DNA from: Sphaerodactylus townsendi
Lineage: Eukaryota
Assembly: GCF_021028975.2 (NCBI RefSeq)
Contig: NC_059425.1
Span: 27,838,001 to 27,902,000, forward strand
Length of the DNA: 64,000 nucleotides
Reading direction: 5' to 3'
The translations under genes were made by a program, and so were the position numbers. Positions 16,261-37,400 of this stretch are shown piece after piece. Under the pieces are notes generated by a model. The model did not search any database. It was not told the origin of the DNA and saw only the letters and a list, made by a program, of their open reading frames with translations. Each line of letters starts with the position of its first letter. Positions within the stretch are counted from its first letter, which is position 1.

Positions 16261-16429
16261 TTTATTGCCTCAAAGCACCAAGTTCTGAGCTGCAGTTGAA
16301 GGCTGGGAAGGGACTAAAGATGCAAGGCATTGTGGGAGGGGCGAAACAGGTTCAGCACGGGCTGCAAACCAGCAATGCATGATCCCAGGTCCTTGGTGTC
16401 CAGTGTGGCTCCACATGAAGTTGCTTTAT
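16261..16429 (-). terminator. PolyA signals of the RNF19-like gene
   Basis: On the minus strand, one AATAAA overlaps the TAA stop (GAA TAA AGC) and a second lies at 16261-16266. Confidence 0.6.
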
Positions 16430-16579
16430 TCTGTCGCGGCTCCTGCCGAGCTGCAGCCCTCGCTGGTGCAGGCGAGAGAGTCTGTGGAGAAGCTGTGGCC
16501 GGATGCTGCGCTGCAGAGGCTGCGCTCCGAGGACGCCTGGGGCTCCACTTCCACCTCCACCTCGAAGTTCAGCCCATCC
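16426..16579 (-). CDS. RNF19-like terminal coding exon 8
   Basis: [20 protein letters not shown]...AATE-TAA; resembles the start of the last RNF19A exon (EGNSMEVQVDIE). Confidence 0.8.
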
Positions 16580-19500
16580 CTGAGCAGGATAGAGAGCAAG
16601 AGTGGGTGGAGCGCCCACCTGTGGCTACAACGGGGTGCATACAATCTGAATTCAGAATCAACAGGTTGCCTTCTGCTCCAGGTAGGACCTCGTTGGCTTG
16701 TGGGGAGGTGGAATTTGCAGCACTGACTACAGGGGCCCTCCTCCCACCAAGCCTGCTTTGAAATCAGAAGGTACTATAGTACCCACCAAGTTCAATGGGA
16801 GGCCTCTAGTCCTGTACTGTGCAACATCTCCCCTTCTCCACTACCTCTGGCCATGCACTGCTTCCCACTACCTCTGGCCATGCACTGCTCCATCACATAG
16901 TTTTTGCCTGATGCTTTCTCTGCCCCTCCTCAGCACACTGACCTGTAAGAAGCTTCTTGGCCTTCGCTTAGCATGCTGCCAGCCAGGGCTATGGTACTTG
17001 CTGACTGGCTGTCTTGCTGCTTTCGTCGGGGCCCTTCATGTTGGCCATGGCCAGTGCTAGGTAATGAGGTAGCCGCCATCGCAGCAGGCAACACCCCAGC
17101 TTCAGCCACCATGTGAGTGGGCAACACAGACAGCAGCTCATTCACTGGAACAGGCAGAGAGAGAAAGAACAAGAGGTGAAGAACTGCACATATGCAGCAC
17201 TGAAAAGTGGATTCGTGCATCTGGGTCATCTTTGCAATGAGAAGGACCTGAGGACAATTATGGTGCTGAGCGTCAGAGAAGGGCTGTGGCTCAGCGATAA
17301 AGGCTCTGCTTTGCATACAGAAGGTCCCAAGTTCAATCCCCGGCACCTCCAGTTTAAAGGATCAAGCTGTATGTGCTGTGAACGACCTGTACTTGAAATA
17401 TTGGACAGCTGCCACCAGTAAAGAGTCGACAGCACTGACCAAGATAGACCACCTTCTATGTCAGCCGCAGGCAGCTTCATATTTTCATCCCTTGAGCTCC
17501 CAACCCAAGATACAAAACCATCAGCATATGAATTACCCAAATGTGGCCTTCTAAACAGGATGCATCTTAAAGACAAGGAGAGGGGACAGGGAGAGCAACA
17601 CTAACCTTTATAGTATTCCTTCTCAGAACACAATAGGTTGGCCCCTATGGGTGTGTCCCAAATGGGACACCCGCCCACCCCAGGCAGGCAAAAAACCCAC
17701 CAAGTGCAGGGATAGCTGCAGTAAGAAGGGATAATTTGGTGATCTTGCTATTAGGGGAAGAGTGTTTCAGGACATAACAGCCAAGTAAGAACTCCACTGG
17801 TAAAAGAACAAGGTGGAAGAAGTTCCCCTGAATTCCGTCTCATCACTGAAGACCTCTGTTTGATTACGTTGCTCTGGGAAGTGGGAGGTGAGGAGTGACC
17901 TGCCACCAGGAGTGGTGCCTTCTGCTTATGCAACCTAGAGCAGATGGATGGGGTGTAGTGGCCTGACCCACTGGGTTCAAATCTCCACTCTGTCATGGAA
18001 GCTCATCAAGCGATTTGGGCCAGTTTCTCTGTCTCTCAGCCTAACCTGCCTCAGAAGTTTGTTTTTATGAGCATGAGGGGAGGGGCAATAATGTGATAAG
18101 TTGGTCTGAGACCTCACTGGTGGACAAAAAAGCTATACTTTAAAACAAAGGATCCAATCCATTGTAATTCTGAAGATTAGGATCATAGGATAAGTGGGCA
18201 TGCGTACCAAGAAAGAGGAATAACTAATTCCCTCTGAATTTTAATCAGAGGGAAAGGAATATGTAACTTTGTAGAGCTGAAGGACTGCTTTGATTTGACT
18301 GTTTTCTCCTTGGATGAGGCAATCTGCATTTTTAGTTGGACATAGGTAAGGGGGGTGGGGGGGTTCCTCAGGTTCAAACCTCTCTTATTACATGTCCAGC
18401 TTGCTAGAAACAATGCATGGAATGAAACAGCTAGAAAGCCCTCAGTCACCAAACCCATCCCATAAAAAATCTATACATACGTCACTGGTTGAGGATTGGT
18501 TAGTTAGGGGATTATTCAGAGCCTACAGATGGTTGGTTTTGCCTGAAATTTTAATAAATCCCTCTGAATGTGTATCTATTCAGTGGGTGAAGACTTCCTC
18601 CCCAGGGAAAATGACAGCAAGGTGCTTTTGAGAAGAACGTCCTGAGAAAGGAAAAGGAATGGTGGGATCACGTCTCAGCCAATATGACACCAAGGAACAG
18701 CTTTTGCACAAGTAACATTAGTTGGAAAAATACTATATCTGAGGACAAATGGCAATGAAAAAGGAATAGTTGGAGCATAAACAGTGTCTTTCCTCACATG
18801 GGAGGGAAGCAGATAAGGAGGAGGTTGAGAAGCTTGGATTTACGCCCTGACTTCTTTCCCATAAGGAGACTCAAGGCGGCTTACAAACTCATTTCCCTTC
18901 CTCTTCCCACAACAGAGACCTTGTGAGGTAGGCACTGGCATAATGCCCATTGGGCAAGGTGGGCAGCTGCCCAGGGCATCACCTTGTGGGGGTTCGTTTT
19001 TGGGTATTTTAGTGGTTTTCCATTTTTGGCCTGCAGGGGGCGCAGTTTTTAGGCTAGCGCAGGGGTAGGGAACCTGCGGCTCGAGAGCCGCATGCGGCTC
19101 TTCTGCCCTTGCACTGCGGCTCCACGAGCCAAGCTGCCGGCTTCATCCTTGCCTGCCCTGCAGGCAGCAGGGCGGGCACACCAATTGCCCACGGACGGCC
19201 GCGCTGTGCTGCGGGCTTCCCCTCTCGCCCACCCTGTTTGAGCGGGGCGGGCGTTTTCCCAGCAGCCAGCAAGGCCAAGCCGCTGGCTCCATCCTTGCCC
19301 GCCCTGCAGGCAGCAGGGCGGGCGCATCCATGCGCTTCTCAGAATGAGTGGAGTAAAAGGTAAAAAAACTCAAAATATACAGTGTTATCTTTATTTTAAA
19401 TGTCAAAAATTATTTGCGGCTCCAAGTGTTTTCTTTTCCCGTGGAAAACGGGTCCAAATGGCTCTTTGAGTGTTAAAGGTTCCCTACGCCTGGGCTAGCG

Positions 19501-22500
19501 GCACCAAAATTTCGGCGTATCATCAGGACACTGTCCTTATTCTACCCCCCAAGTTTGGTGAGGTTTGGTTCAGGGAGTCCAACGTTATGGACTCCCAAAG
19601 GGGGTGCCCCTATCCCCCATTGTTTCCAATGGGAGCTAATAGGAGATGGGGGCTACAGTTTTGAGGGTCCAGAACTTTGGCCCCCCTGAACCAAACTGCA
19701 CCAAACCTGGGGGGTATCATTAGGGCAGTCTCCTGATGAGACCCTGAAAGTTTTGAAACTGTGCCTTCAGAAATGTGCCCCCCCCCCCCCAAAGCCCGCA
19801 ACCCGCATTGACAGCAATACAGAAAACTCAATGCAGAACAAAGATTCTTGGGCAAATTTCTAGGATGTTCCTGTAGGGGGTGCATTTTTGGATGTATCGG
19901 CACCAAAATTTCAGAGTATCATCTGGAGATGATGGCACCCCCCCAAGTTTGGTGCAGTTTGGTTCAGGGGGTCCAAAGTTATGGACCCTCAAAAGGGTAG
20001 CCCCCATCTCCTTAGCAAAGAATGGGGGATGGGGCACCCCTTTTGAGGGTCCATAACTTTGGACCCCCTAAACCAAACTGCATCAAACTTTGGGGGTTCC
20101 ATAAGGACAGTTTCCAGATGATACCCTGAAATTTTGGTGCCGATACATTAAAAAATGCACCCCCTGCAGGAACATCCCAGAAATTTGCCCAAGAATCTTT
20201 GTTCTGCGTTGAATTTTCTGCATTGCTGTCCATGGGGGTGGCAGGCTGGGGGGGGGCATTTATGAAGGCACAGTCGCAAAACTTTCAGGGTCTCATCAGG
20301 AGACTGCCCTAATGATACCCCCCAAGTTTGGTGCAGTTTGGTTCTGGGGGTCCAAAGTTCTGGACCCTCAAACAATGGGGGATGGGGCACCCCCTTTGGG
20401 AGTCCATAATTTTGGACTCCTTGAACCAAACCAAACCTTTGGGAGTAGCATAAGGACAGTCTCCTGATGATATGCTGAAATTTTGGTGCTGATATGTCTA
20501 AAAATGCACCCCCTGCAGGCACCAATGTCCTGGTGCAAAAAAAATTGGTCGTGGTGGAGTGGCCGCCCATGGGGGCGGGGGGGGGGGGGCATCCAACTCA
20601 GGTTTTTCCCAGGGCTACAGTTTGCCCAGGGCTGCCTCATTACGCCCCTGGAGGTAGGGGAGGCTGAAAGAGTTCTGAGAGAACTGGGACTAGCCCAAGG
20701 TCACCCAGCAGGAATGTAGGAGTGCGGAAACACATCTGGTTCACCAGATAAGCCTCTGCCACTCATGTGGAGGAGTGGGGAATCAAACCTCCGGATTAGA
20801 GTCCACCTGCTCTTAACCACTATACCACGCTGGCTCTCAGGAAACTGGGAAACAATGAGGTGTATCCAACCAACTTTCCCACTTGTGCAAAAAAAAAGAA
20901 GGATCCTCTTTGATCACCTAAAAACATGATGAGGGTTATATACGGAAAAGCCACGAGGGACAGGAACTCTAGTGAGGATGGGAACTGGACAAGACTGAGA
21001 GGTTGGATCCATCTCGCTAACTGTAGAAAGAAAATAAAAGGCAGGACTTCCAAGCTGCAGTGTCAAGCCAGAAGAAAGATTGAGGAAAATCAGTTTGAAG
21101 TTGTAAGGGGTTCCTGGACATTTTCAAAAAAGAAACTGATTATTGTACATACAAGAACTGATGAGACGGCTGGCTAGATCAGAGCTGCCCAGCTAGAATT
21201 GAGTTGTATGTCTTCAGACTTTGCACACCAGTCGACCAACAGATACGTAAGTGATTTTTTCAAAGCATGCAAGCAAAAAGGGGCTCTTATTCATAGGGTT
21301 GTCTCCCTGTTGAGCAGGCTTATGGACATCATTGTAAAGGGAATGGTCTAAAGGTGACATCATAATCAGCATGACACTAATTTCAGTTCCACCTGAGAGT
21401 GTTACTGGATTCTATTATTCAGTTTCTCTACCAATGCCAGAAAAGTCTCATCAAACTAGCAGGGGAAAGACTTACATTCTTCTACCAGGCAGGGGACAAA
21501 ACTCCCTTTTTGCTTTGTCCACTACCACAGATTTCATTAGTAGAAGAGGAAAATTCTGCCCCTTTTTCCCTCTGCAATGTACTGATCCTTGGAGCTTTTT
21601 GTCCACATGGGTTCTGCAATCCTGGGAATCAATTGTCCTAAGTAGGAATGGACTGTCATGGGAGAGACCTGCAGAACACTGGATCCAACCCATGTCTCCA
21701 TGCTGGCAGAAAATCCCACCATTAGCAGAACAGAACAGCAGATTCTAACCTATTGTAAAGATCACATCCACAGAACTGAACTCACCTGAGTGACCAAACG
21801 TCTCCTATTTTGTGCTAATGTAGAGGACGTCTCCTATTTTATGCTAATGTAGAGGACGTCTCCTATTTTGTGCTAATGTAGAGTGCTAATGTAGAGGCTA
21901 CCAATCTTGATCCTCTTTGATCTGAGATTGCAAATGCCTTAACAGACCAGGTGCTTGGGAGCAGCAGCCGCAGAAGGCCATTGCTTTCACATCCTGCATG
22001 TGAGCTCCCAAAGGCACCTGGTGGGCCACTGCGAGTAGCAGAGAGCTGGACTAGATGGACTCTGGTCTGATCCAGCTGGCTTGTTCTTATGTTCTTATGA
22101 TGCCCCCTTGGCAAGACCATTAAGATTGGGTCGTCTATTCTTTTATTGCTCACTGACATTTTGCATAGTCTGATCTGCTATGTTCCGGATATGAAACCTT
22201 GGAAAACCAATTCATTTGATGAGCTGACAAAACATTGGAGAGTCCAATAGAGGCTGACTTTCATCAGTGCAGAAAAGGTCTTCAGTGGCTTTTGCTATTC
22301 GTGTGAAGAGATGCAGTTTTGAGCTGCCCGCAAAACTGAAAATCAGCACGGCTCTGTAGAAACCAACAAGTAAAGCTTGATGAATGGACATCTGATAGGT
22401 TCGGTTTCAACATGGAGAGGATTTGCTAAGGTTGGAGCTGGTTCCTTCTCTGCCCACTACCAGGCATTTGCGCTTTCCTTCTATCCCACCCACCTGTATG

Positions 22501-25500
22501 ACTCCCCCCTGCTTGTGTATGTGTGTCCTTCCCTTGTCTGCTCACAAACATTCCCACTGCCCATATTCACTGCCAAGCTGCCTGCAGCCCTTTCCCTGGT
22601 GGCACTGGGCAGTGCATGCAGCAGAGAACCATGGATAGTGAACCACGAGCAAGTGAGTAGGGAGGGGATGCTGGCAGTGGTGGGTCCTGCCACAAACCTC
22701 GGGCCACGCCAGCTACCCATTTCAAGCATGCTGACACCAACCCTGGTCAAGATTGTCCCCTTTCACCCATGTCTGTGCAAACCTCTTCGAGTCCCAGCGA
22801 GAGAGGGAGATTATAAATAACTTAAGTAAATAATAAAGAAATAAAAATAAAGTTATTCTGCACCTCACACCAAAGTTGGAACCAATTGTTTCATTCAAGG
22901 TAGGCTAGCAGGTGACAAGAGAGACTGTGACAGGCCAAGGCTGGTGTAGTCACCAATTCATCCCCCAGAGAGCTCGGATTCCCCTTCTCACCCTGCTTGA
23001 AGGGCTCCAACAACTCACGTACATTTGGCAAGGTTCTCCAGTTCTACGGTGCTGAGCTCCCCGCCTTTTCTTCGGGTGCCACCGCACCCCCAGCGGTTCC
23101 GGCAAAGAGAGAGCGCCACCACGCCATACACGTAGGTGAGCATCAGCGGCACCCCAACCCCTGCAAGCAGAGAGCCTGATGTGAGAACCATCTATTCCCA
23201 CAGACTGTGCAAGTCAGGCTAGTAGACAGAGCATTGCCAAAAGGGCCGTCTGGTCCTCCTTTGCCCTTCAATGACAATGCAACAGATGCCTCCATGAATC
23301 TAGTACCCTCTTCCAAACACAGCTTCCTTTTGGCTCTTACCAACAGTGACTGCTGTGATTACAGGTGACACAAAAAGGGACAGAAGAATACTGCTGGACA
23401 CAGACAGACACTGCTGGCAGATGGACAGTTTGCTCTTGCGTCCATGGCTCAGGACCTGGAAGGAGTGAAGTGAAGATTTATTTATTTATTTATTATTAAT
23501 TTTATATACCCCCCTCCCCCTGAGGGCTCAGGGCGGTTCACAACAAGGTTAAAACATACATTAAAACATAATTTAAATATTAATTACACAAAAACAGAAC
23601 CCATTTAAAAATGTGGATGGCGTCTGGCTACCCCCTCCCCCCTATTGAGGCTGGGAAAAGCAGTACTAAGTCGAGAGAACCTCCTAAATCACAGGTGTCA
23701 AACTCACAGCCCTCCAGATGCTGGCAGGGGATGATGGGAACTGTAGTCCATAACATCTGGAGGGCCGCGAGTTTGACACCTATGCCCTAAATAGTTCCTC
23801 CACCACCATGCCTCCGAGAGCATTACGGTGATGAATTTTAGAAGCTCCTGCTGGGGGAAAGGGGAACAAAATGCCTCACCTTCTTTCCCATGTAGATGGG
23901 TATCCCTAGGGTGATGACTGGCACGGCAATGCCCGCAACGATCGAGATCACCATTGGTGCTCCCAGCACCATGCCTAGTTGCCAAAGGAGCTTGCGTGTC
24001 CGGGACCAGGGCTTCTTCCCCCAAAAGGTGCATCCAGAAGGACTGAGGAGAAGACAGTTGGGGTCAGTAGCGGAAGTGAGGATGGCAAGAAGGCACTGGA
24101 GGTCTTACTGAGAACTGGCTAGTGCCAGTTTCCCAGGCTGCGTGGCCATGGTCTGGTACACAGTCCGGAAAACCCATGACAGCCAGTTGATTCTAGCTGT
24201 GAAAGCCTTTGACAATACATCTTACTGAGAACCCTGAGGCTTTGAAGAAGTCACCAGGCTTGACTGTGCACACTTCATGACAGGGCCTGTTCTAAGTTTT
24301 AAGAGACCCTGTTCAGGGAATGTTTTCTCTCTGCCCACTCCCAATATCCCCACTCACACCTCCCTTCCTGCCCTCCTCCCCACATACCTCCCATCTGCTT
24401 CCAATCCTTTCCACCATCTACATTCACAGCCACCTACATGCCCTTTCCTCCATGGCACTGGGCAGGGTGCACGGTTGGGAGTAAGCTGCTGTGACTATCC
24501 GGAGTACTATCAGCACCACCTGCACACACTTCCCTGCTGGAATTGGGCAATCAAGAGCCACGGGAGCTGGAATGTTTGCAAGAAAGTGGGTGAGAGAATG
24601 GGGCACAGGGAGGTTTGTTGGTGGAGGTCGGTGGCAATGGGCCCTGGCAGATGCCCCACCTCAGGGTAGGCTGATGCCAGCCTTGATTTATAAGCTATTT
24701 CTGGTAGTCATAAGGGTTAAAACCTTGGGGTTCTTAGGGGTCAGATTAGCCCCATGAGAGAATTGGGATCTGATCTCAGCAACTGTCAGACATACAGGTG
24801 CATGTGATCTCAGTCCCAGGAGCCAGCGTGATGTAGTGGTTAAGAGCAGGTGGATTCTAATCTGGAGTACCAGGTTTGATTCCCCACTCTTCCACCTGAG
24901 TGGCAGAGGCTTATCTGGTGAACCAGATGTGTTTCTGCACTCCGACATTCCTGCTGGGTGACCTTGGGCTAGTCCCAGTTCCTGGGAACTCTCTCAGCTG
25001 CACCCACCTCACAAGGTGTCTGTTGTGAGGAGAGGAAGGGAAAGGAGCTTGTAAGCCACCTTGAGTCTCCTTACAGGAGAGAAAGCTGGGATATAAATCC
25101 AAACTCTCCTCCTCCTATCAGAGCCATGGAGGAAGAGGGTGTCTATGTTTTTCTACAGCAGCATAATTTTGTCTTTGAAAACTGCTAACCCACCTCCCAT
25201 ACACAAACATGCTCAAGCTTTGGGAGGAAAAAATATAGAAACATTACGGATAAATTTTTTTTTTTGGCCTTTCAGGGCTCAAAACAGCATGGGGAAGGTG
25301 GTTTTGATAAGCCAAACCATGCAGAACTGGGAGGAATAAACTGTTTTGCCTCCACCAGTGGTTTGAACTGGGCTGCATGTCCCCAGCATTTACTTCTAAA
25401 AAACTGGGTGATCTGTGGCTTCCAGAGTGTTTAATCAGACCCTTACCTTGTGTGGTCAAATTCTACTCTTCTCTATGCTTGTATAGAGTCTCAGACCCAA

Positions 25501-28500
25501 ATGAGGCCAGCACTGCTCTTGCCTGCCCAACCCTCACAATATTTTGGGACACCCTTCCAAGAGATATCCATAAGGTCTGATCTGCTGTCATTTTAGGCAA
25601 ACATGTTCTTTTCCCACCAGATGTTCACCGAATTTTACATTCCTGCTGCTGCTGTTAATGTTCACATGTACTGTTTTGAGAACTGTGTTGTGATTGATTA
25701 TTGTCCAGTTGTTGTTACAGTATGCTAAAAGCCATTCTGGCAGCACGTTCAGCTATGAAAACAGGTATAAATAAATGATGGCCTTTGTTTTAAGATCATA
25801 ATAAATCGAATTAAGGATCTGCTTGGTTAGACCAGCGGTCCATCTAGCCTAGCATCCTGTCTCACACTGTGGCCAAACATCAAAGGTCTGGAAGACCAAC
25901 AAACATGGCGCTGGATGCAGGCTTTATGTGCTACATCAGGATAGATCTGAGCCTGCTTCAGCTTCTATTTCCTGAAGGGACAAGATGGGAACGAGGGGCC
26001 TAATGTAAAGATTCAGTTTCCCTGTAGTGTTCCCTGACCACTGCACCATTCTGTCCCCCACCTTCCACAGCAAGCTACCACCTGAGGAAGTGTACGTCCG
26101 TGATCTCTCGCAAGCACAGCCAGCAGAACAGGCACCCACAGACGGTGCAATTCATGCGATTGCAGCTCCCATCATTGATCTTCATGATGAAGGCACCACA
26201 GCGGGGACACACTTTGATGGTTTCGGTGTCTGCTATTAAGGCAAAGGAAACAAAACGGTCAGCACAGTCAGCCTCAAGTGATGGAGCTGTGCCTTAGAGC
26301 AAGCCCTGGCAATGGGTTGCTATTATTATTATGCATTGAATTTATAGCCCGGCCAAGGTCAGGCTCAGGGCAGCGTCCAAAGATATTTAAAACATTCCAT
26401 GAATAAAATAACAAGAAACAACTACTAAATGATACAATCCAGATGGCGAACCTATGGAAAACCACCTGTCTCACCCAAATGCAGTCCTCATTCAAGGAAC
26501 TGCTGAGGGTGGCAGAGCTTCTTCCTTTATGATAGGTAGGACAGTGCAGAATGACATGAGTACATTGGTGGACAAGTATCAGGAGGCTGTCAGATAGGAT
26601 TGGAATGGATGAGTGGCCTCAACCAAAGCCCGGTGGAACATCTCTGTCTTACAAGCCCTGCAGTACTGGTTAAGGTCCCACAGGGCCCTGGTGTCCGCTG
26701 GCAGAGAGTTCCACCAGAGCGGAGAAAGCCCTGGCTCTGGTCGAGGCCAATCAAACATCCTTGGGGCCAGGGACCACCCGTACATTTCTATCAGGGGGCC
26801 GAAGCGTCCTCCATGGGCAATATGGGATGACACGGTTTTGGAGATATGAGGGTTTGAGACCACTCAGGGCCTTAAAGGTTAAAACCAAAACATTGAACCT
26901 GATTCAGAATTCCACCGGCAGCAGGTGCAGCTGCCAGAGCACATATATTATGTGCTCTCTCACCAACACACTGTCAAGGAGCCCAGCAGCTGCATTCTGA
27001 AGCAGTGTCAGCTTCCAAGCCAGTCTCAAAGGCAGGCCCATGTAGGATGAGTTACAGCAGCCTAACCTGGAGGTGATTGTCGCGTGGATCACCATGACCA
27101 GGTCAGGGCGGGATAGGTAAGAGGCCCACTGCCTGGCCTGTCAGAGATGGTAGAAGGCCACCTTCACCGTGTTCATGACCTGGCCCTCCATGGACAGGGA
27201 GCAATCCAAGGTCACACCCAGTCTTTTTACACATGCGGCCGGTTGTAATGCACATCCCCAAAACTTGGCAGCTATAAACCCTCCAGCAGTCCGCCATGAC
27301 CTAGCCACAGGACCTGCATCTTCAGCGAGTTTAACTTTAATCTACTTTTTTCCAACCATCCAGCCACGGCCCCCAAACGCTGGGCCAGAACATCCGGTGC
27401 AGAGACTGTCTGACCATCCATCAACAGAAAAAGCTGGGTGTCATCAGAATATTGATGGCAACCCTGCCCAAAGCTCCAGACATGATGTGCAAGCGGCAGC
27501 ATATAGCCCCCTGCAGCACTCCACAAACAAGGGGATGGTGTCGAGTGTCACCTGCTGTCCCTGGTCCTTGTTGAGGTCAGCCATTTCAAGGATGTTCCCT
27601 GCATCCCAGCATCAGCGAGGCGGTGGGTCAAAAGATCTCGGTCAACCATGTCAAATGTTGCTGTGAGATCTTAATAGCACCAGCAGCACTGACCCGCCTC
27701 AGCCCAGCTTCATCTGGAGTTCATCTGTGATGGTGACCGACATGGTCTGGGTCCTTTGGCCAGGACAGAAGCAAGACTGGAAGGGGTTCAAAACCAATGC
27801 ATCCTCCAGAAACACTTGTAGCTGTTCTGCAGCTGCCCTCTCAACTACCTTTCCCAGAAATGACAAATTCAAAACTGGGCGGTAGTTGCCCAGATCCAGG
27901 GGATCTAATGTTGGCTTCTTTGAGAGTGAGTGCACCAATACCTCTTTTGACCTCTCCAGGAATATTCCCTATGATAGGGAGCAGTTGACAGTTTGCAACA
28001 GGGGGCTCCACAGAACCTCACAACTGGGCTTTACCAGCCATGAGGGACATGGATGCAGAGAGCAAGTGGTAGGTTTTATGGCCATGTGCACTCTGTCAAC
28101 ACCAATAGCCAGCTGATAGGGAACTGCAATGCCCCATTAAGGGGAGCCAAGCCTTATCAGAGAGGTGCTGAGTTCTTCCCTGAGTCCTAGAGGAGGAGGA
28201 AAGTTGGTTTTTATACTCCACTTTTCGCTACCTTTTAAGGAGTCTCAACACAGCTTGCAATCACCTTCCCTTCCCCTCCCCACAACAGGTACCTGGTGAG
28301 GCAAGTGAGAGTTCTGAGCGAACTGTGACTGGCTCAAGATCACCCAGCAGGCTTCATGGGGAGGAGCGGGGAAACAAATCCACTGCAGCAGATTAGAGTC
28401 CACTGCTCTTAACTACTACATCATTCTGGACATTTAAACCCACTAACCAGTCAGAATAAAATTAAATGTTTTGACTTGATGTCTAAAGTTTCAAGAAATG

Positions 28501-31500
28501 GATTGAAGAGGGGATTCCAAAGGCCTTGGTATGACAGAAAAGACTCTCTCGCCTGTTGCCACATTATCTCAGAAGGTAAGGAGAAGAGGCAGGTGCCAGA
28601 AGATCAGGGCAGCTGAACTACTGTCACAAGACAATGTGTGAATTTACCATTGGTTCTCAGAGAAATGGGTGATGGGTAGAGTTCGGAAAAGATGATACCC
28701 CTTCACTCGAGATAGAAACAAACCCAGTTCATAAGATTAGAATCCAGCTACACAAGTGGAGGAGCAGGGAATCAAACCCGGTTCTCCAGATTAGAGTCTA
28801 CTGCTCTTAACCACTACACCACACTCAACTAGATATTAAACTGATAAGAACAGATATTATACTTTATCGTAGCAAAAGGCTGATAAGTGATACAGGGCAT
28901 CCTGGCTCTGGATAAGGGGATGCCACTAATCCCATGGGCAGCTTGGTGTTGAGAGAAAAGAGGCACACAAACACAGGGCTGGAGCGAGGGGGAACTATGC
29001 CCAGGGCACACGTGCGCTCTGCACCCCTGCCCCGGAATGTCCCTGTCATGCCCCCACCCCGGCGCGTGCCCGGTGCATCGCGCCCCCCATATCCCCTTGG
29101 CGCTATGCCATTGCACCTTGCTGGCCTGAACTCACACCTTGCTGGCCTGAACTCACCCCGGGCAGCCTCCTCCTTCTGGATCAACTGGGTAGAGAGTTCC
29201 ACTGTCCCTGCAGTCTGCCGGCTCCATTCCTGCCAGGCCTGCTCACAGGAAGAGTTGGGATGCCAGGGCTGCCGGCAGTGGTAGCAGAACTCTGTCCTGC
29301 AGTCCTGGCGGCCACAGACAAGCCGGGGGCATTCAGCACAGCCGTAGGCTATGACCGCATAGCTAAGGGAAAGAGCAAGAGGAAAGGTGTCAGCCTAGGA
29401 TCAGTGCAACAATTTTACATGCACATTTTCTCCCAAATCAATCCACACTCCATTGCCTCCTCTAAAATAGACAGTGGATTATCCTGCTTTGTCAGACCCA
29501 AGCATCAATTGATCACATAGGGAGATTGGGTGCCAGTCTCTTCAAGATATGACGGAGACTAACGGAAGGTTACAGTCGCCTTTGGGGATGCGGGGTGAGT
29601 GAGCAAAAGCCTGCAGCCAACCAAGTAGTCCCAAAGACCTAAGTGCACTGAAGGGAGTTTTGTTAAGAGGGGTGGAAAGTTCTGCTAATTCCTCCCTCCT
29701 GCTGCAGCCCACTAAGCCCCCAGAATTGCTGCTCCAGTGGGTCAGAAACTACTGTCCACTCTTAAGAAATGTGACTTTGCGTCTTAAGAGTCTGGGCTTG
29801 AATGCAGGACAGAGTCACTAAGGTAGAGCAGATGGTCTCCTATGTGTCAGTTCAGGTGTGGTCCACAGCCCAGAATATCTAGGGGATGATGGGAACTGTA
29901 GTCCATAACATCTGGAGGGCTGCGAGTTTGACACTTGTGGTCTAGATCACAGGGTGGCTGAACGCTACATTCCTGGTAGTCAACAGGCAAAAATCTCTCG
30001 CATGACAGAGCAGCTCCTGGATTGAATATTGCCATAGGGAATCATAGCATTGGAAAGAACCACATAGGCCACCTAGCTGTCCTAGCACAATTCCCTGCTC
30101 AATGGAGGAAAGGCCTAAATTTTTATTTATGTATTAGACTTGCTTTGCTGCCCCTCACCTTATGGGCTCAGGGTGGCACACAACATCTATAATACATACA
30201 AAAAACAAAAATAATACACAGCTAATAAAACATATCTATTGCAAAGATGATGTTTCAAGTCTGGTCTCTTTACAATAATAAGACCCACCACACCGAGGAA
30301 ATCTTAATCAAACAATGGTAGTAATGTTAATGGGGGATGAATGGATTCAAGGTGCAGGCAAAGAGATTCCACCTAAACATTAGGAAGAACTTTCTGACCA
30401 TCAGGATTGTTGGACAGTGGAATTCACTGCCTCAGAGAGTGGTGGAGTCTCCTCCTTTGGAGGTTTTTAAACAGAGGCTGGATGATCGTATGTCAGGAGT
30501 GCTTTGATTGTGTGTTCTTGCATGGCCCTGCATGGACTTGATGGCCCTTGTTATCTCTTCCAACTCTATGATTCTATGAATGGGGGAGGCCTAGAAGGTT
30601 AACAACCTCAACCATAGGCCTGGCAGAGCAGATCTGCCTTGCAGGCCCTGCAGAATTGCATTAGGTCCTGCGGGAGCCTCTCCACCTCCTCACCCCCTGG
30701 GCAGCATTGGATCCTCCAGCAAGATCAGGCTCACACGTAAGCCTTTCTGCTTATCTCCACAACACTTCATGTTCTTCCACCTTGCCTGTTTTTCCATGTG
30801 CTTAGTCACAATCTTTAAGGGTCCTCATTGTGACTGGTTGGAACTGATCCAGTGCAAACCAACTCTGAACATCTGTTGCCTTGAAAACTCTACAGGGCCA
30901 CAACTATGATTGACGGCACTTCCATCACCGTTGTATGGTGCATTTACATTTTTTACGTTTTATCCCTAATTGTCTGTGCTTCTGGTGCCGTCGCAAAACA
31001 CACAGGTACTTGTGTGATATTTTGCCAGGAGGTTCAAGATAAAAGTTAAGGAGTGGTCGGAGGAGCGGAGCGCTTCACAGGCCTCAAAGGGAAGATTTTC
31101 AGTTCAGTGCAACTGCTCTTGCATGCAGCCTGAGCTCATGATTTAAAACAGAAGGAAAGTCAGGGCAAGACAGTCAGCAGTAAGTCAGTGTAGACTCTTT
31201 TTAAGCAGTTCCTGTGTCCTCTGAAATCCCATAGAGATTTTCAAGGTCAGCTTTGATTTTACACAAGGCCAGCACAACTCTAGCATAAAGAAGCCCACAT
31301 AGAAATGAGAGCAAAAATGGGGAATGGTTGTAGTTCAGTGGCAGAACATCTGCTTGGCATACAGAAGGTCCCAGGTTCAATCTTCACCATCTCCAGTTAA
31401 CAAAAAGCACCAGGTAGCAGGTGATATGAAAGACCTCTCCTTGAGACCCCAGTCATCCACTGCTCACCTGATCAGACAAAAGTGATGGACGAAGGCTTTC

Positions 31501-33242
31501 ACGGCCGGATTCAACTGGTTCTGGTGGGTTTTCTGAGCTGCGTGGCCGTGGTCTGGTGGATCTTGTTCCTAACATTTCACCTGCATCTGTGGGCTGGCAT
31601 CTTCAGAGGTGTGTCACAGAGGGAAGTCAGATGCAGATGCAGGCGAAACGTTAGGAACAAGGTCCACCAGACCACGGCCACACAGCCTGGAAAACCCACC
31701 AGAACCAGACAAAAGTGACTTTAATAGATCTGGAATACAATTCAGTATGAGGCAGTTTCATGTGTTCGTGATGAGACCTGTTATTCCCTTGTCTTGCAAT
31801 TGTGGTGAGCAAGAATGTGGCCTTTCTCTCAGCCTACGGAGCCAAACCAGACACCACTGGGAGATTGCATTGCGGAACACTCTCTTAGGACAAAGGCCCA
31901 AATTGTGGTCTGAAGGCAGCAAGGGGGATGGGGAGGTGATTTTGTCTGGGGTCTCCTGTGACTCAGAATGTATTCCAGCCCCCTGAAAAACCTTCAGCTA
32001 CTTCAGTCTCCCACTGCTCCAGAGCTAGAGAGGTCATCCCCACACCCTTTCCTCCATCCCAGCAGAACTTTCTGCTTTGCCTTCCCAATCTGAGATCTCA
32101 CACTGCACTTATGGGGCACTTAGGAAGCAGTAGGACATTCCATCTGGTTATTGGTATATCCAGCCCCCACACTGTCTGCTCTGACTGGCAACAGCTCTCC
32201 AGGGATTCGAGCAGAGATAGCTCTAAATGCCGTTGTTTGAGAGGGCTTTTTAAATGGAAAAACTGAGAACGGACGTTGCCTTTCCAAAAGAGACCAAAAC
32301 AGGGTCTCCGCAAGGTGCCCAGGCCATGCCAGCATCTCTTCTCTGTCTGGCTTCCATCACATAACAAGGATGAAGAAACTACCGGGACCTGCTTGTCTCT
32401 GGACTGTAACATGCAACGCACTTAGACATCTTCTGGAGTTTTGTCTGACCACCTGGCACAAATCTAGGGCTGCACCCAGACTAAATGGAAGGCACTTCCA
32501 TCAATCAAACCTCCTGCCTCCTCCTTGTTCTCTCTGGCATCCATTTGTCTCCTTAAAAGCTGCTCCTGAGGGAGTCTCAAAAACAGCATAAGATGTCTGC
32601 AGCAGGAAGAGGGGAATCGGTGGAAATGACACTAGCAGAAAGTTTAGTCTGGATCTAATGCATTGCGACCCTAGCCAACGGGATAAGGATGCCTTCCCTG
32701 GCCCAAAGGGCAAACTCCCTTTCTCAGTTGCCCTCCCTTCACCTGAGGTCACCACTGCCCTACCTGCAATCTGGAGCAGGGCACCAGCGGGTGCCTGGGT
32801 CAGCCACCAGGAGACGCCGCAGCAGGTATTCTTCATACTTCTCACCCAAGTTGGTCTCCGGGAGTAGCTGATGGATCTCCGAGGGCTGGAGAAGAGCAGG
32901 GCAATGCGGACAGGCCACCTGGACGCGGCTCTCGCTGATCTCGATGCGCAAGTACTGCTGCAAGCAGGTGAGGCAGGACAAGTGGGAGCAGCAGGAGAGT
33001 GCAGGGAAGGCTGCCGGAGGCTGGGGCAGCAGGCACAGTGGGCATTCTAGCAAGCCTTCCTCTTCCTCCTCCTCCTCCTCCTCTTCTTCCTCCTCCTCCT
33101 CCGGCACCAGAGAGATATGGGTCTCTGCAGGGTTGCCCAGAGGGGATTCCAGCTTCCCATCCTGTTCCAAAGTCACTTTGGGTTTTCGTCCGAAAAGGCC
33201 CAGGATGCCGAGGGAGGGAGGGCTCACTTTGGGCCTCTTCAT
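16426..33242 (-). CDS. RNF19-family RBR E3 ubiquitin ligase (RNF19-like, neither RNF19A nor RNF19B), 8 coding exons, 535 aa
   Basis: Exons in transcript order: 33242-32764, 29362-29157, 26232-26082, 24042-23880, 23455-23341, 23160-23023, 17144-16943 and 16579-16426. All GT-AG with compatible phases; 1608 nt with no internal stop. RING1, IBR, RING2 and two hydrophobic segments carry RNF19 signatures ([65 protein letters not shown]). Confidence 0.93.
16943..17144 (-). CDS. RNF19-like coding exon 7
   Basis: [11 protein letters not shown]...[23 protein letters not shown]; polypyrimidine acceptor and donor [15 protein letters not shown] resembles the RNF19A ASTMALAGA/ASTKAMAGS motifs. Confidence 0.85.
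17278..17482 (+). mobile_element. tRNA-derived SINE
   Basis: GGGCTGTGGCTCAG...GGTCCCAAGTTCAATCCCCGGCA head plus the family body. Confidence 0.75.
18933..20650. mobile_element. 1.7-kb non-autonomous hAT-type element with large internal inverted repeats
   Basis: Ends CACTGGCATAATG and CATTACGCCCCTG; perfect 8-bp TSD GAGGTAGG at 18925-18932 and 20651-20658. Confidence 0.88.
19060..19492. mobile_element. Nested hAT MITE, 433 bp
   Basis: TIRs CAGGGGTAGGGAACCT and AGGTTCCCTACGCCTG; perfect 8-bp TSD GGCTAGCG; CpG-rich, so probably young. Confidence 0.92.
21798..21896. repeat. 29-bp tandem repeat, three copies plus a partial
   Basis: Unit ACGTCTCCTATTTTGTGCTAATGTAGAGG. Confidence 0.85.
21895..22099 (+). 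mobile_element. Young CR1-type 3' end
   Basis: Ends in TTCTTATG repeats; about 6 mismatches in ~200 bp versus the reverse complement of 38287-38495. Confidence 0.8.
23023..23160 (-). CDS. RNF19-like coding exon 6 (second hydrophobic segment)
   Basis: [28 protein letters not shown]...ENLAK; donor GTACGT, with an out-of-frame GTGAGT 4 nt further on. Confidence 0.9.
23341..23455 (-). CDS. RNF19-like coding exon 5
   Basis: [38 protein letters not shown]; acceptor TTCCAG, donor GTAAGA. Confidence 0.9.
23691..23783. mobile_element. Short palindromic hAT MITE
   Basis: CAGGTGTCAAACTC...GAGTTTGACACCTA; relatives at ~29873, 38840, 48358, 50275 and 60520. Confidence 0.75.
23880..24042 (-). CDS. RNF19-like coding exon 4 (first hydrophobic segment)
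   Basis: [54 protein letters not shown]; AG and GTGAGG junctions. Confidence 0.93.
24116..24219. mobile_element. Short Penelope-derived insertion
   Basis: End GTGAAAGCCTTTGACAATACA; 13-bp TSD TCTTACTGAGAAC. Confidence 0.8.
24820..25116 (+). mobile_element. Sauria-type SINE, full length
   Basis: Head GAGCCAGCGTGATGTAGTGGTTAAGAGC, tail ATAAATCCAAACT followed by CTC repeats. Confidence 0.85.
26082..26232 (-). CDS. RNF19-like coding exon 3 (RING2/Rcat)
   Basis: [51 protein letters not shown]; NAGNAG acceptor TAGCAG. Confidence 0.93.
26560..28115 (-). mobile_element. Degraded L2/CR1-clade LINE reverse transcriptase fragment
   Basis: Frameshifted peptides [37 protein letters not shown] and QLHLLPVEF in ORFs 27699-27938, 27272-27526 and 26904-27095. 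Confidence 0.85.
28195..28425 (-). mobile_element. Sauria-type SINE
   Basis: Reverse-complement similarity to 24820-25116. Confidence 0.7.
28974..29113. mobile_element. Short hAT-type MITE related to 54434-54899
   Basis: The end CCCCTTGGCGCTATGCCATTG is the reverse complement of the 54434 terminus; no TSD recognised. Confidence 0.6.
29157..29362 (-). CDS. RNF19-like coding exon 2 (IBR domain)
   Basis: [42 protein letters not shown]...; acceptor CCCTTAG, donor GTGAGT. Confidence 0.93.
30347..30578 (+). mobile_element. CR1 LINE 3' end
   Basis: [12 protein letters not shown]-type end of ORF2 and an ATTCTATG-type tail. Confidence 0.85.
31486..31705. mobile_element. Palindromic Penelope-derived insertion inside a tRNA-derived SINE (31321-31765)
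   Basis: 13-bp TSD CAGACAAAAGTGA; long inverted arms; hammerhead remnants on both strands. Confidence 0.8.
32764..33242 (-). CDS. RNF19-like coding exon 1 (start, poly-E tract, RING1, start of IBR)
   Basis: [22 protein letters not shown]...E15-GLLECPLC...[10 protein letters not shown]...CPHC...RWCPAPDC; donor AG|GTAGGG; the exon acceptor is at 33453. Confidence 0.92.
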
Positions 33243-34163
33243 GCTGGAGACGAGGAAGGGGCAGCTCAACGAGGAGGCAGGCAGCCGTCAGGACATGGCG
33301 CTCCCCAGCCAGGATGAGTAGCAGAGACAGAGAGTCCCTCCAGACACAGGTGTCTACCCCATTCCCAGCATCTCCAAGGCCTTTCTCTCAGCTGGCTCTG
33401 AGAGCAAGGAGCTGTGCTATCGACACCTTCCTTCTCATCAAAGTCTGTGAACCTGGAAGAGGTGACAGGAGAAGAGGCAGACAAGGAGCTCAGTCATGAT
33501 TTCCAACTAGTCTGGTCTGACGCTGTATGCTTGGGCTGCCAGCTCTGGCTTGGGGAATTCCTGGGGAGTTAGAGGTGGTGCCTGAGGGTGCAGGAATCTG
33601 AGGATGGGAAGGAGCTTGGCAGGGATATGAGTCTACTCTCTGAAGTGGTCCTTCCCCTCCATGAGAACTGAGCTATGTAGACTGGAGATCAGTGTAATTT
33701 TAAGGCAATTCCAGACCCCACCTGGAGGTTGGCAGCGCTGTCCAGTCTGGCTGGCCTGTAGGATTTTTACCAGGAGTGGGGAAGTACCTGAGGGAACAGG
33801 CAGGAGATGGAGAAGGGAGGGAGAGCTTGCCAGGGGCCGAGAAGTCACTGAAGGACCTGCTCTGCCCCTCTCTGGGACTGAAAGCATAAAGGGGACCCCG
33901 GAGCTTCTCCTGCAAGGCTATCCACTGTCTCTTTAGCACAGAGAAGCTGTGGATTTGTTGATTCTCGCAGTCTTCCTGGGCATTGGAGGCCCTAGCTGGC
34001 CTCCCCCGCTCCCTTCATCAAGAGAGGGCATCCCAGCCCAGCAGTCAAGGAGACCCAGACGTCAGCCTGTCCTTTAACAGCAGCTGGAGCTGGCTCGATC
34101 CTTGCAGCGGTGTTGCCTGGGCAACTAGGAGGGGACCAGGAAGGATGAAGGATGCTAGCTTAC

Positions 34164-34406
34164 CTGCCTCTTGCTCCCTGAGCCCCTGCCTTGCTTCGGC
34201 TGCTCCTTCACTGAGCCCCCCTCCCCCAGCCACTGCACACTCTGCACTCCGGTGAGTGCACAGCATCCTGGGAAGTGTAGTCCATCCCCATGATCTGCCG
34301 GCTCGTTGACTTCACAGAAAAGGTATCCCTGAATTCTTCAGACTCTAATGCCACTCCTGCACCTGGAAGTAGTCTCTGTTGGGAAGAGTCTTCAGCAAGA
34401 GAAGTT
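34164..34406 (-). other. Candidate 5' non-coding exon or promoter-proximal exon of the RNF19-like gene
   Basis: Strong donor CAG|GTAAGC at 34163 and a polypyrimidine acceptor TTTTTCCCTCTCACAG at 34407. It contains a ZNF143-type motif, so transcription may start inside it. Confidence 0.45.
34258..34283 (-). promoter_or_regulatory. ZNF143/THAP11 (SBS) motif upstream of the RNF19-like gene
   Basis: The minus strand reads GGACTACACTTCCCAGGATGCTGTGC, close to the ACTACAnTTCCCAGnATGC consensus, and no MITE TIRs flank it. Confidence 0.5.
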
Positions 34407-37400
34407 CTGTGAGAGGGAAAAATCAATAAACCCAGAAGAGTGAAAAGACTTTGGCATTATTAGCCAGCCCTCAGCACCCTTTAATCACTGTCTAGAGACC
34501 AAATGAAAGGTGGCAGGTGAGATTCTTGCCTCAGGGACAGCCATCCAATGCTCTGTACTTGGCACATCATGCCTGGATCTCAGTAACAATCTCGAATGTG
34601 GGGCACTGCCACTCTATTTATTTTAAAAACATTTCCCCCTGGCCCCTCATCAAAAAAAAAAAAAAGAAAGAAAAGAAAAAGACAGGTCATCCATACTAGT
34701 AAAATCTATTGATTAAAACAATCCGGTGCCACAAAATCATCTACGGTAATCAAACACCTCATCTTATCATCATATATTAAAGACACCACATATTAATCAG
34801 CTAAAACAAAACTAACTTGGGTTGGTTGCATCACACATTTCCCACAGACAGAAGAAGGTTTAGTATCCTCTGTGAATATTTAACAGGAAATTCCTCTTTC
34901 TCACCTCATTAAGCATGGTTCCGAAAAAGAGGTGCCACAACTTTGAAAGCTCCAGATCAGCCCACTGATGATTTCACCTAATGAATGACCACCACTAATG
35001 CCAGCTGTCCGTTCTTGTCATGCCCCTAGAGACACCCTCTCTATTTTCTTTATTCAAGCCTCAGTTGTACTCTTAGAGAATTGGCTTAATTGTTTTTGTG
35101 TAGTATTCTGTGGGAGGGAACCTTAGTTAAACCCTGTCCCTTTCAAAAGCCCTCTATAGGCAAGAGCACTGCAGTATTGTTGTTAGTTTGCAGCCCCTTT
35201 TTACAGTTTTGTTTAGTTTTCAGGTGTCTGGGGAAGGCTGGAGGCAACAATATCTCAAATGTATAAGGTGTTAGAGATCCATAGTATTTTGAGTTACATT
35301 CCAACAAAATTGCAGGAAAAACAGAGTCCAGATACACAGGAGAACTCAGAAGAAGAGGCAAGCAGAGCGGTTAGAAGCAGTTGCCTGGTGCCAGCAAGCT
35401 CTTCAAATAATCTTCAATTGTTTCCACCATCGCAAGTATGAGTCAGAGTTCTAAACTTTCAATGCTGTTACACCTGTCTTGGAACTGTTGCTCATTTGTC
35501 TGTGGGTCTTACATTCTGTTCTGGCCAAGTGCAAGGCACCTGATATTAGTTCGCTTGGGGAACAGAACAGCTCTTAACTGGCCCGTGGACTCAAATGGAA
35601 AGGGTGGTTTCAAGTACGTAAAGTCCAGATTTCTAAAGATATTTAGAGATTAACACTAGCATCTTGAATTAAGACCAGAAGCAAACTGGTAACCAGTGCA
35701 GTTGGTGCAAATATAATCATGCTGTCCGCTACCAGAGAACAGGTGAATGGCTGCATTTTCCTCCAGCTGGAACTTCTGGCTGTCTTCCAGGGCAGCCCCT
35801 GTATAGAGCATATTACAGTAGTCAACCTTAGAAGCTCCCGAAACATGGATCAGTGAGGCAATATTAGTCTGATCTAGAGGAACAAAAATGGAAAGAAAAT
35901 ATTCCAGGCCACTGCCAATGTGGGTTCAAGAATATCCTTAGACTTTTAATTTGATCAGATGGTTATATTTATTTTTATTAGATTTAATACCCTGCTCTCT
36001 GCTGCCAGAGCAGGGTCAGAGCAGCTCACAATAAATACATATACATAATATTAGTCATAAATGATGTCATTTAAAATAATAAACTTATAATCTATGTAGA
36101 ACTATATGAGCCTAAGACGCTAAACACAACCAGGGGTGGTTGCAACAGTCACCCATTTCTGTAAAAAGAAGAGAAAAGAAGGGAAGGGAAGGGAAGAGGG
36201 AAGGTAGCCAGCTAAGATGGAGGTACCTCCCACACTGCTGCACTTAATTATAGGCCTTGTGGAACAGATCTGCCTTGCAAGCCCTACTGAATTGGGATAA
36301 GTTCCACGTGTCCCTGGGCTCATTTGACGAGGCGTTCCACCAGGTGTGAGCCATCTATCACTGGTAGTGCCACCCACTTGAAAACACTGGCATGTCTAGC
36401 CTGTATTACCTAAATTTGCCTAAATCTGTTGAGAGTACTGAGAAGAATCAACATGATTCTCCTATCTCCTGCCTCTCCTATCATAAAGCTGGGGAGAGTA
36501 GGGATTAATATATGGGTAATATGTGAGTGATCTATAGTTAATAGTGCCATCTTTGTAATTTATATATTGAAATGTTTTAATTATTATTTATTGATGCTGA
36601 ATTTTTAAGACTGTGTTTTAAAGTGGCCAGGGAGGGCAGAGTATTAAGTTTAATAAAATTTTAAAAAATTAAAAATGAAAGTATTTTCATTTTTCTTCTG
36701 CTCCACAGAAATGGGTAACATCAATAGTTATCTGCAACTGATGAGCGTTCTCTGTTACAGTTCCAACTTTCTGCAAGGGCCCACCAGACATGGTTAGGAA
36801 GGTTCCTGTATTTTTTTATCATTTTTTAAAATGGAAATGTTCAGGGGGCATTTTTAAAAAGAGAACAGAGCTGTAGTTTTCATATCTGTGAAAAAAAAAC
36901 AGTATTATACTGGTTTTATTGCATTTATTGCACCATTTTATTGCTTTTTTATTTTGTCCATTATGTTGTTTTATTACAATTTTTAAAAATTGTAATCCAC
37001 CATCCATCTCAGTGAGAAAAGTGGGCTATAAGTTAAGTAAGTACATAAATAGCATCTGGATCAAAGAGGGTGTAGTAGAGTACTCCTGGGAACAGGCTAG
37101 GTTCTGATGGGCAAGTGCAAATAAAGAATAACAAATTACAGGATTGTAACAGTGATCTGATCTTATCAGCAGATTCTGAACAACATCAACGCATCATGGT
37201 AAGCTCTTGGTCCAAATTCAAAGATTAGCAGCCAATAGGTAGCTGTGGCTACATACCTAAGAACATTTTCCTGGAAGTAAGCCCCACTGAATAAAATGGG
37301 ACTAACTTCTGAGTAGACCAATTTAGGATGACTGCCCATGTGTATGTGAAATTTGAAATTGTAATTTTTGATACTCATTGTTACAATTCAGAAGAGTGAG

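Follow-up and report, generated by a model that had tools for sequence, protein, structure and literature searches.

The RNF19 family of ubiquitin ligases has, to our knowledge, been studied only as RNF19A and RNF19B: RNF19A is Dorfin, with links to neurodegeneration and DNA repair, and RNF19B is NKLAM (also IBRDC3), which acts in innate immunity. Here, we analyzed a 64,000-nucleotide stretch of the genome of the gecko Sphaerodactylus townsendi (assembly GCF_021028975.2, contig NC_059425.1, positions 27,838,001 to 27,902,000; hereafter the window, with coordinates counted from its first letter), in which an eight-exon gene between PPM1G and ZNF513 encodes a protein with a RING1-IBR-RING2 (RBR) domain and two hydrophobic segments. 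From its sequence and relationships, this gene is likely a functional third vertebrate RNF19 (Dorfin/NKLAM) paralogue, and its clade carries replacements at two of the three residues of the RBR catalytic triad.

In described RBR ligases, the Cys of the triad is followed two residues later by His and, further along, by Glu, Asp, or Gln, and substituting these residues inactivates parkin, HHARI, and HOIP in vitro (PMC3940038). The His of HHARI acts mainly on unloading and not on thioester formation, HOIP is functional with Gln at the third position, and RING1 of Dorfin binds a UBE2L3-type ubiquitin-conjugating enzyme (E2) (PMC3940038). Ubiquitination of a small-molecule amine by RNF19A and RNF19B, acting with UBE2L3, has been reported (review PMC13270118). 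As for their genomic settings, a human 8q22 amplicon holds RNF19A, ANKRD46, SNX31, and NCALD (PMC3617176), and the human genes EIF2B4, SNX17, ZNF513, PPM1G, and NRBP1 are listed in direct succession, with nothing between ZNF513 and PPM1G (PMC2570409).

Compared with these systems, the third gene has its sister clade in RNF19B, with which it shares the RBR domain and two transmembrane helices (58-67% identity), the intron positions, and short tail motifs. It differs from RNF19B in its locus (ZNF513/PPM1G versus a TMEM54-like gene and hippocalcin), in a tail of ~130 residues versus ~300, in clade branches about ten-fold longer, and in an active site reading GSCNRMNC...GCLFCW versus GSCNHMTC...GCEFCW. 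RNF19A shares the architecture (58-69% identity in the RBR domain and first helix) and a C-terminal N-x-E-V-x-V-E motif, whereas it is more distant in the tree, evolves very slowly, keeps the canonical Cys-His-Glu triad, and lies, in human, in the 8q22 region with ANKRD46, SNX31, and NCALD (PMC3617176). In ARIH1/HHARI, ARIH2, parkin, and HOIP, the RING1, IBR, and Rcat domains align with those of the third gene and the catalytic Cys is in register, but those proteins have His plus Glu, Asp, or Gln (PMC3940038) where the third clade has Arg plus Leu or Gln, and they lack the transmembrane pair.

Exon limits were set by tblastn of a Rhineura floridana protein named 'RNF19B-like' (P0157, 524 aa), which had been found by a whole-library search using the RING1 part of exon 1, against the window, and splice sites were read directly; exons were searched singly, with the RefSeq orthologues of Paroedura picta (P0165, 530 aa) and Rhineura (P0157) as full-length proxies. 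On the minus strand, the gene runs from an ATG at 33242 to 16429, followed by a TAA at 16428-16426. Its exon lengths (479+206+151+163+115+138+202+151) sum to 1605 nt, i.e., 535 codons, 7/7 introns are GT-AG with phases agreeing at every junction, the tblastn-aligned exons contain no stop, and the window contains no runs of N. The exons are 77-98% identical to those of the Paroedura 'RNF19B-like' gene. The first-pass annotation, made from the letters of the window, had proposed eight GT-AG exons, 535 residues, and a span of 16426-33242; the same count was recovered, and the span proved to reach exactly from stop codon to ATG.

The domains are distributed over the minus-strand exons as follows. 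Exon 1 (33242-32764) begins with MKRPK, an N-terminus likewise present in the seahorse and sturgeon orthologues, continues through an acidic Glu run and the RING1 ligands (32901-33044) into the first part of the IBR (from 32786), and ends in phase 2 at a donor GT (32763-32762). Exon 2 (29362-29157; acceptor AG 29364-29363, donor GT 29156-29155) holds the remainder of the IBR (ligands to 29245) and a short linker, and exon 3 (26232-26082) holds RING2/Rcat (26090-26209), with the catalytic Cys codon at 26164-26162, Arg for the triad His at 26158-26156, and Leu for the triad Glu at 26131-26129. A conserved motif and the first transmembrane helix (~23892-23978) are in exon 4 (24042-23880). Exon 5 (23455-23341) encodes a loop and, from ~23410, the first half of the second hydrophobic helix, which is completed in exon 6 (23160-23023; helix to ~23102) ahead of a basic juxtamembrane stretch. 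The tail is encoded by exon 7 (17144-16943), which is poorly conserved apart from a short ASTxAxAGS motif common to RNF19A and RNF19B, and by exon 8 (16579-16429 coding, plus the TAA), whose N-x-E-V-E-V-E-V-E motif is common to all three paralogues; an AATAAA stands at 16266, 159 nt beyond the stop.

Two alternative splice sites were considered and rejected. For exon 2, a short tandem copy of GTGAGTTCAGGCCA offers another donor 20 nt further on, which would be out of phase with exon 3; for exon 6, AAAT|GTACGT was chosen over AC|GTGAGT because it reproduces the conserved AK-L-NELL junction of the orthologues. The tandem copy of GTGAGTTCAGGCCA lies directly past the exon 2 donor (window 29120-29157), and the linker encoded by exon 2 varies in length among orthologues, with five more residues in Rhineura.

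Several lines of evidence identify the product as an RNF19-type RBR protein. Pfam gave RING and IBR signals in exons 1 and 3, with the IBR starting at the end of exon 1 and IBR/IBR_1 on exon 3, and sequence searches of the PDB matched the RBR domains of ARIH1, ARIH2, and parkin. RING1 has a C3HC4 pattern, with all eight ligands aligning to RNF19B and the RING1 of ARIH1 matched in the PDB; the IBR/BRcat domain is present between the RINGs, with exon 2 ligands aligning to RNF19B; and the exon-by-exon alignment with gecko RNF19B places every Zn-ligand Cys and His of RING1, IBR, and RING2 in register. Exon 1 is 58% identical to gecko RNF19B, all Zn ligands being retained, and exon 4 is 67% identical to RNF19B. 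Directly after the RBR domain come two hydrophobic stretches (19-residue Kyte-Doolittle means of 2.41 in exon 4 and 1.84-1.89 across exons 5/6), which align to the RNF19B helices and give the RNF19-subfamily architecture. Pfam, the PDB, the RNF19B alignment, and hydropathy thus all agree with the RING1-IBR-RING2 protein, Zn-ligand pattern, and two hydrophobic segments that had been read from the sequence at the outset.

The gene's position in the family was examined with IQ-TREE on 64 rows and 539 columns (LG+C20+F+G4 by posterior mean site frequencies; cyclostomes, i.e., lamprey and hagfish, not among the rows). RNF19A (100/99), RNF19B including sharks and the gecko RNF19B proper (100/99), the third clade (100/100), and the invertebrate homologues (100/99) each formed a supported clade; the three vertebrate clades were separated from the invertebrate homologues at 100/99, with amphioxus outside all three. 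The third clade was sister to RNF19B (98/89), its internal branching followed the species tree, and exon 1 of the window was sister to Paroedura (100/98). Joining the third clade to bony-vertebrate RNF19B only was 22.5 log-likelihood units worse and was rejected by the approximately unbiased (AU) test (p-AU 0.0037), the tested group having been chosen after the tree was seen. The tree and this test place the split of the third clade from RNF19B before the divergence of sharks and bony vertebrates, and the duplication is dated between the separation from invertebrate chordates and the radiation of jawed vertebrates. The intron positions equal those of bird RNF19B (common boundaries APDC|, HFL|SPSG, GKK|V, and TVG|), and the copies therefore arose by DNA-level duplication.

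The most distinctive feature of the third clade is its active site. The Cys of the exon 3 motif GSCNRM aligns with the catalytic Cys of ARIH1 and ARIH2, and the Rcat alignment with these two proteins confirms the register, with Arg under the catalytic His. Across the third clade, the His position holds Arg in 118 of 122 members (GSCNRMNC or a near variant, including three fish with GSCNRINC), the four exceptions being His in Haliaeetus P0181, P0212, and P0237 and Cys in Falco P0196. Among 113 comparison sequences (RNF19A, RNF19B, and invertebrates), the motif was found in 112, the amphioxus sequence P0026 lacking it, and all 112 have the His, 110 of them as GSCNHMTC. The Glu position is Leu (tetrapods, coelacanth) or Gln (ray-finned fish) in 122/122 third-clade members, compared with Glu in 95/95 RNF19A and RNF19B sequences, while the catalytic Cys and every Zn ligand are retained in all 122. 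Hence, the third clade fits the RBR domain family although it departs from the canonical triad at both the His and the acidic or amide residue.

These replacements raise the question of whether the protein is an enzyme at all. It could be a catalytically dead pseudo-ligase kept as a membrane-bound binding partner of E2~ubiquitin, substrates, or RNF19A/B, as the replacement of two triad residues across the clade and the in vitro inactivation of other RBRs by such substitutions (PMC3940038) might lead one to expect. Set against this are the catalytic Cys and Zn ligands kept in 122/122 members and a nonsynonymous divergence (dN) of zero in exon 3 between the window and Paroedura. Dead enzymes usually lose their nucleophile. 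In addition, a Gln at the third position does not prevent HOIP from functioning, and the His of HHARI mainly affects unloading (PMC3940038). On balance, we consider a dead scaffold unlikely, albeit an explanation to be taken seriously, and clearly favor an active enzyme with altered discharge chemistry, because the nucleophile and all Zn ligands are kept and exon 3, which encodes RING2, is the most constrained exon.

By homology, then, the third RNF19 protein would be a two-pass membrane-anchored RBR E3 ligase, whose RING1 would dock a ubiquitin-charged UBE2L3-type E2 and whose RING2 Cys would take over the ubiquitin as a thioester and pass it to an acceptor near the membrane. The discharge step would probably be slower than that of RNF19A and RNF19B, or directed to another type of acceptor, because the His and the acidic residue that aid ubiquitin discharge are replaced clade-wide. 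A more specific version of this proposal, which we offer tentatively and consider doubtful, is that a rewiring of the active site, dating back more than 400 million years, has since been held constant by selection, and that the enzyme would carry out a non-canonical transfer (e.g., to a non-lysine or non-protein acceptor) or maintain a long-lived thioester. Unusual acceptor chemistry in this family would not be far-fetched, because RNF19A and RNF19B are reported to act on a small-molecule amine (PMC13270118).

How the third gene arose can be approached through its neighbors. The window reads PPM1G (+, ~1.8-12.8 kb), third RNF19 gene (-), ZNF513 (+, 41.8-45.0 kb), SNX17 (-, near 47 kb), and EIF2B4 (+, 55.5-62 kb); PPM1G, ZNF513, and SNX17 were read from open reading frames backed by Paroedura Pfam annotations (and, for ZNF513, by alignments), and EIF2B4 from open reading frames alone. 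Paroedura has SNX17, ZNF513, the third gene, and PPM1G in the order and orientation of the window, and crane has a C2H2 gene, the third gene, and a PP2C gene, such that the arrangement between PPM1G and ZNF513 is shared with both. The human gene order (PMC2570409) agrees with the first-pass annotation, in which no gene stands between human PPM1G and ZNF513. In seahorse, a divergently oriented two-block zinc-finger gene, 66-68% identical to ZNF513 of the window, lies upstream of the third gene, and the ZNF513 adjacency therefore probably dates to the bony-vertebrate ancestor; no ZNF513-like sequence was found within 10 kb of the halibut and sturgeon third-gene loci. On the other side, the downstream neighbor is a gene of ~280 aa with a PID domain in teleosts (halibut and seahorse; L002, L006), followed in seahorse by a heat-shock-factor gene, and a collectin gene (Collagen plus Lectin_C) in bichir (Polypterus) and sturgeon (Huso, L004 32988-35389); PPM1G is not a neighbor of the third gene in bichir, sturgeon, halibut, or seahorse. 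The bird RNF19B locus adjoins a BCLP-domain (TMEM54-like) gene and hippocalcin.

Paralogues that lie in separate regions, each with paralogous neighbors, show the usual signature of ohnologues. Only a few candidate pairs of this kind were seen here: SNX17 in the window with SNX31 near RNF19A, and hippocalcin beside RNF19B with NCALD in 8q22 (PMC3617176). Together with the (A,(B,third)) topology, these pairs fit an origin in the two-round vertebrate genome duplication, with later loss in mammals, and we regard such an origin as probable although not proven. The whole-genome-duplication copy put forward by the first-pass annotation is, in this respect, consistent with the tree and with partial neighbor evidence but not demonstrated. 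Alternatively, the gene may be just as old, the RNF19B ancestor having been copied by a local or segmental duplication that preceded the radiation of jawed vertebrates. Both the tree and the AU test date the split and are silent on its mode, the neighbor evidence is thin (SNX17/SNX31 and hippocalcin/NCALD, PMC3617176), and the visible neighbor in bichir and sturgeon is collectin, not PPM1G. This alternative nonetheless appears rather improbable to us given that the three paralogues occupy three chromosomal regions, each apparently with paralogous neighbors, that (A,(B,third)) fits two duplication rounds and one loss, and that intron positions are retained.

Selection was gauged by Nei-Gojobori codon counts summed exon by exon. 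The window against Paroedura gave dN 0.029, synonymous divergence (dS) 0.402, and dN/dS 0.071 over 524 codons, and against crane dN 0.184, dS 1.363, and dN/dS 0.135 over 486 codons, values that show strong purifying selection; exon 7 evolves fastest (79% identity and dN/dS 0.31 versus Paroedura). In birds, an orthologue of 512 aa (P0180, 91 member sequences) is encoded on contigs of ~2 kb; since the crane gene extends over 3.9 kb, these contigs must be spliced transcripts. No CpG island was found at the 5' end (window 32000-35000; CpG observed/expected 0.14-0.36), which would fit a tissue-restricted promoter. This missing island could also be read as a mark of an unexpressed or decaying pseudogene still open by chance, but with a dN/dS of 0.071 over 524 codons at dS 0.40, 7/7 splice-site pairs intact, intact orthologues in more than 100 species, and the spliced bird transcripts, we consider this very improbable; the low dN/dS against Paroedura means that the third RNF19 gene is not a pseudogene, in line with the intact gene of the first-pass annotation.

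The distribution of the gene was drawn from the best 120 matches to P0157 (E-values <=1e-148; 52-100% identity to the Rhineura query). These include squamates, dozens of birds, alligator, axolotl, caecilians, coelacanth, lungfish, bichir, sturgeons, paddlefish, gar, and many teleosts, a range from teleosts to birds for which the earlier phrase "kept in reptiles" is correct as to reptiles and too narrow overall. Mammals, turtles, frogs, and cartilaginous fishes are missing from these best 120 matches, as read from the match list and not from genome searches; the proposed deletion in mammals agrees with this list. Turtles, frogs, and cartilaginous fishes do occur in the RNF19A and/or RNF19B match lists, yet not among the third clade's best 120, which hints at further independent losses beside that in mammals or at missing annotation. 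Some orthologue models exceed the usual 480-550 residues by 150-280, namely, those of Elgaria (P0167, 727 aa), Pogona (P0169, 808 aa), and passerines (P0202, P0207, and P0213; 684-730 aa), and may be read-through or fused predictions.

The third RNF19 gene is already in databases, auto-annotated in more than 100 species, and is not new there; that it might be listed as 'RNF19B-like' had been guessed correctly. Every named protein among the best matches is either an RNF19-type or a generic 'RBR-type E3' entry, and RefSeq and UniProt names for the orthogroup vary by species among 'RNF19B-like', 'RNF19A-like', 'RNF19A', and 'RNF19B' (e.g., 'RNF19A isoform X2' for P0218 of coelacanth and 'RNF19B' for P0254 of Scleropages). 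We found no paper on a vertebrate third RNF19 gene, the literature matches concerning aphid, mosquito, a carp-goldfish hybrid, and, in one case, human RNF19B.

True RNF19A and RNF19B sequences were recovered separately. An annelid homologue served as the seed of one search, which had length limits that excluded full-length RNF19A and thus returned isoforms or partial models of it; this search gave RNF19A from turtle, Podarcis (P0312), mouse, and fish, and RNF19B from sharks, chimaera, coelacanth, caecilian, turtle, platypus, marsupials, and placentals. Turtle RNF19B, used as the next query, retrieved RNF19B proper from five gecko species, Rhineura, Podarcis, snakes, Anolis, birds, frogs, gar, and sturgeons. 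The separate RNF19B, of ~770-830 aa, is thus present in the geckos Paroedura, Eublepharis, Gekko, Sphaerodactylus, and Euleptes and also in Rhineura and Podarcis. RNF19B and the third gene occur together in Paroedura (RNF19B P0437), Rhineura (P0425), coelacanth (Latimeria, P0351), Rhinatrema (P0414), and gar (P0486), and lie on different contigs in Paroedura and Rhineura. Erpetoichthys P0410, a UniProt entry with a generic name only, groups inside the RNF19B clade.

The reading of the gene as a lineage-specific duplicate within RNF19A or RNF19B, or as no more than the species' plain RNF19B, as the names 'RNF19B-like' and 'RNF19A-like' would have it, has next to no chance of being correct, given a third clade that is separate at 100/100 with fish included, the AU p = 0.0037, a distinct RNF19B elsewhere in geckos, and a locus unlike that of RNF19B beside hippocalcin. 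The first-pass annotation had taken the gene for a third family member and not the sole RNF19B, a view borne out by clade supports of 100/99 or better, by the AU test, and by the separate RNF19B of five gecko species, Rhineura, and Podarcis.

We acknowledge that some observations weigh against a functional third paralogue with the history given above. The absence of the gene from mammals, turtles, frogs, and sharks is read from a list of the best 120 matches, and the RNF19A and RNF19B of the window's own genome are inferred from five gecko species. The third clade sits on a long stem (0.97 substitutions per site), such that its sister position to RNF19B could be affected by model error. Finally, loss of the triad His inactivates the studied RBRs in vitro (PMC3940038), and ligase activity is not to be assumed.

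Mammalian loss of genes after the vertebrate genome duplications is common, and because of this, the evolutionary pattern alone is unsurprising; the finding is solid but moderate. Nevertheless, the RNF19 family gains a third ancient member, present in ray-finned fish, coelacanth, lungfish, salamander, caecilians, squamates, alligator, and birds, with none found in mammals, and the inconsistent RNF19A, RNF19B, and '-like' labels that it carries can distort orthology assignments and work on expression in fish, birds, and reptiles. With two triad residues replaced and the nucleophile under strong constraint, the clade represents a natural experiment on RBR ubiquitin discharge, and this conserved, unusual active site is the part most worth experiment.

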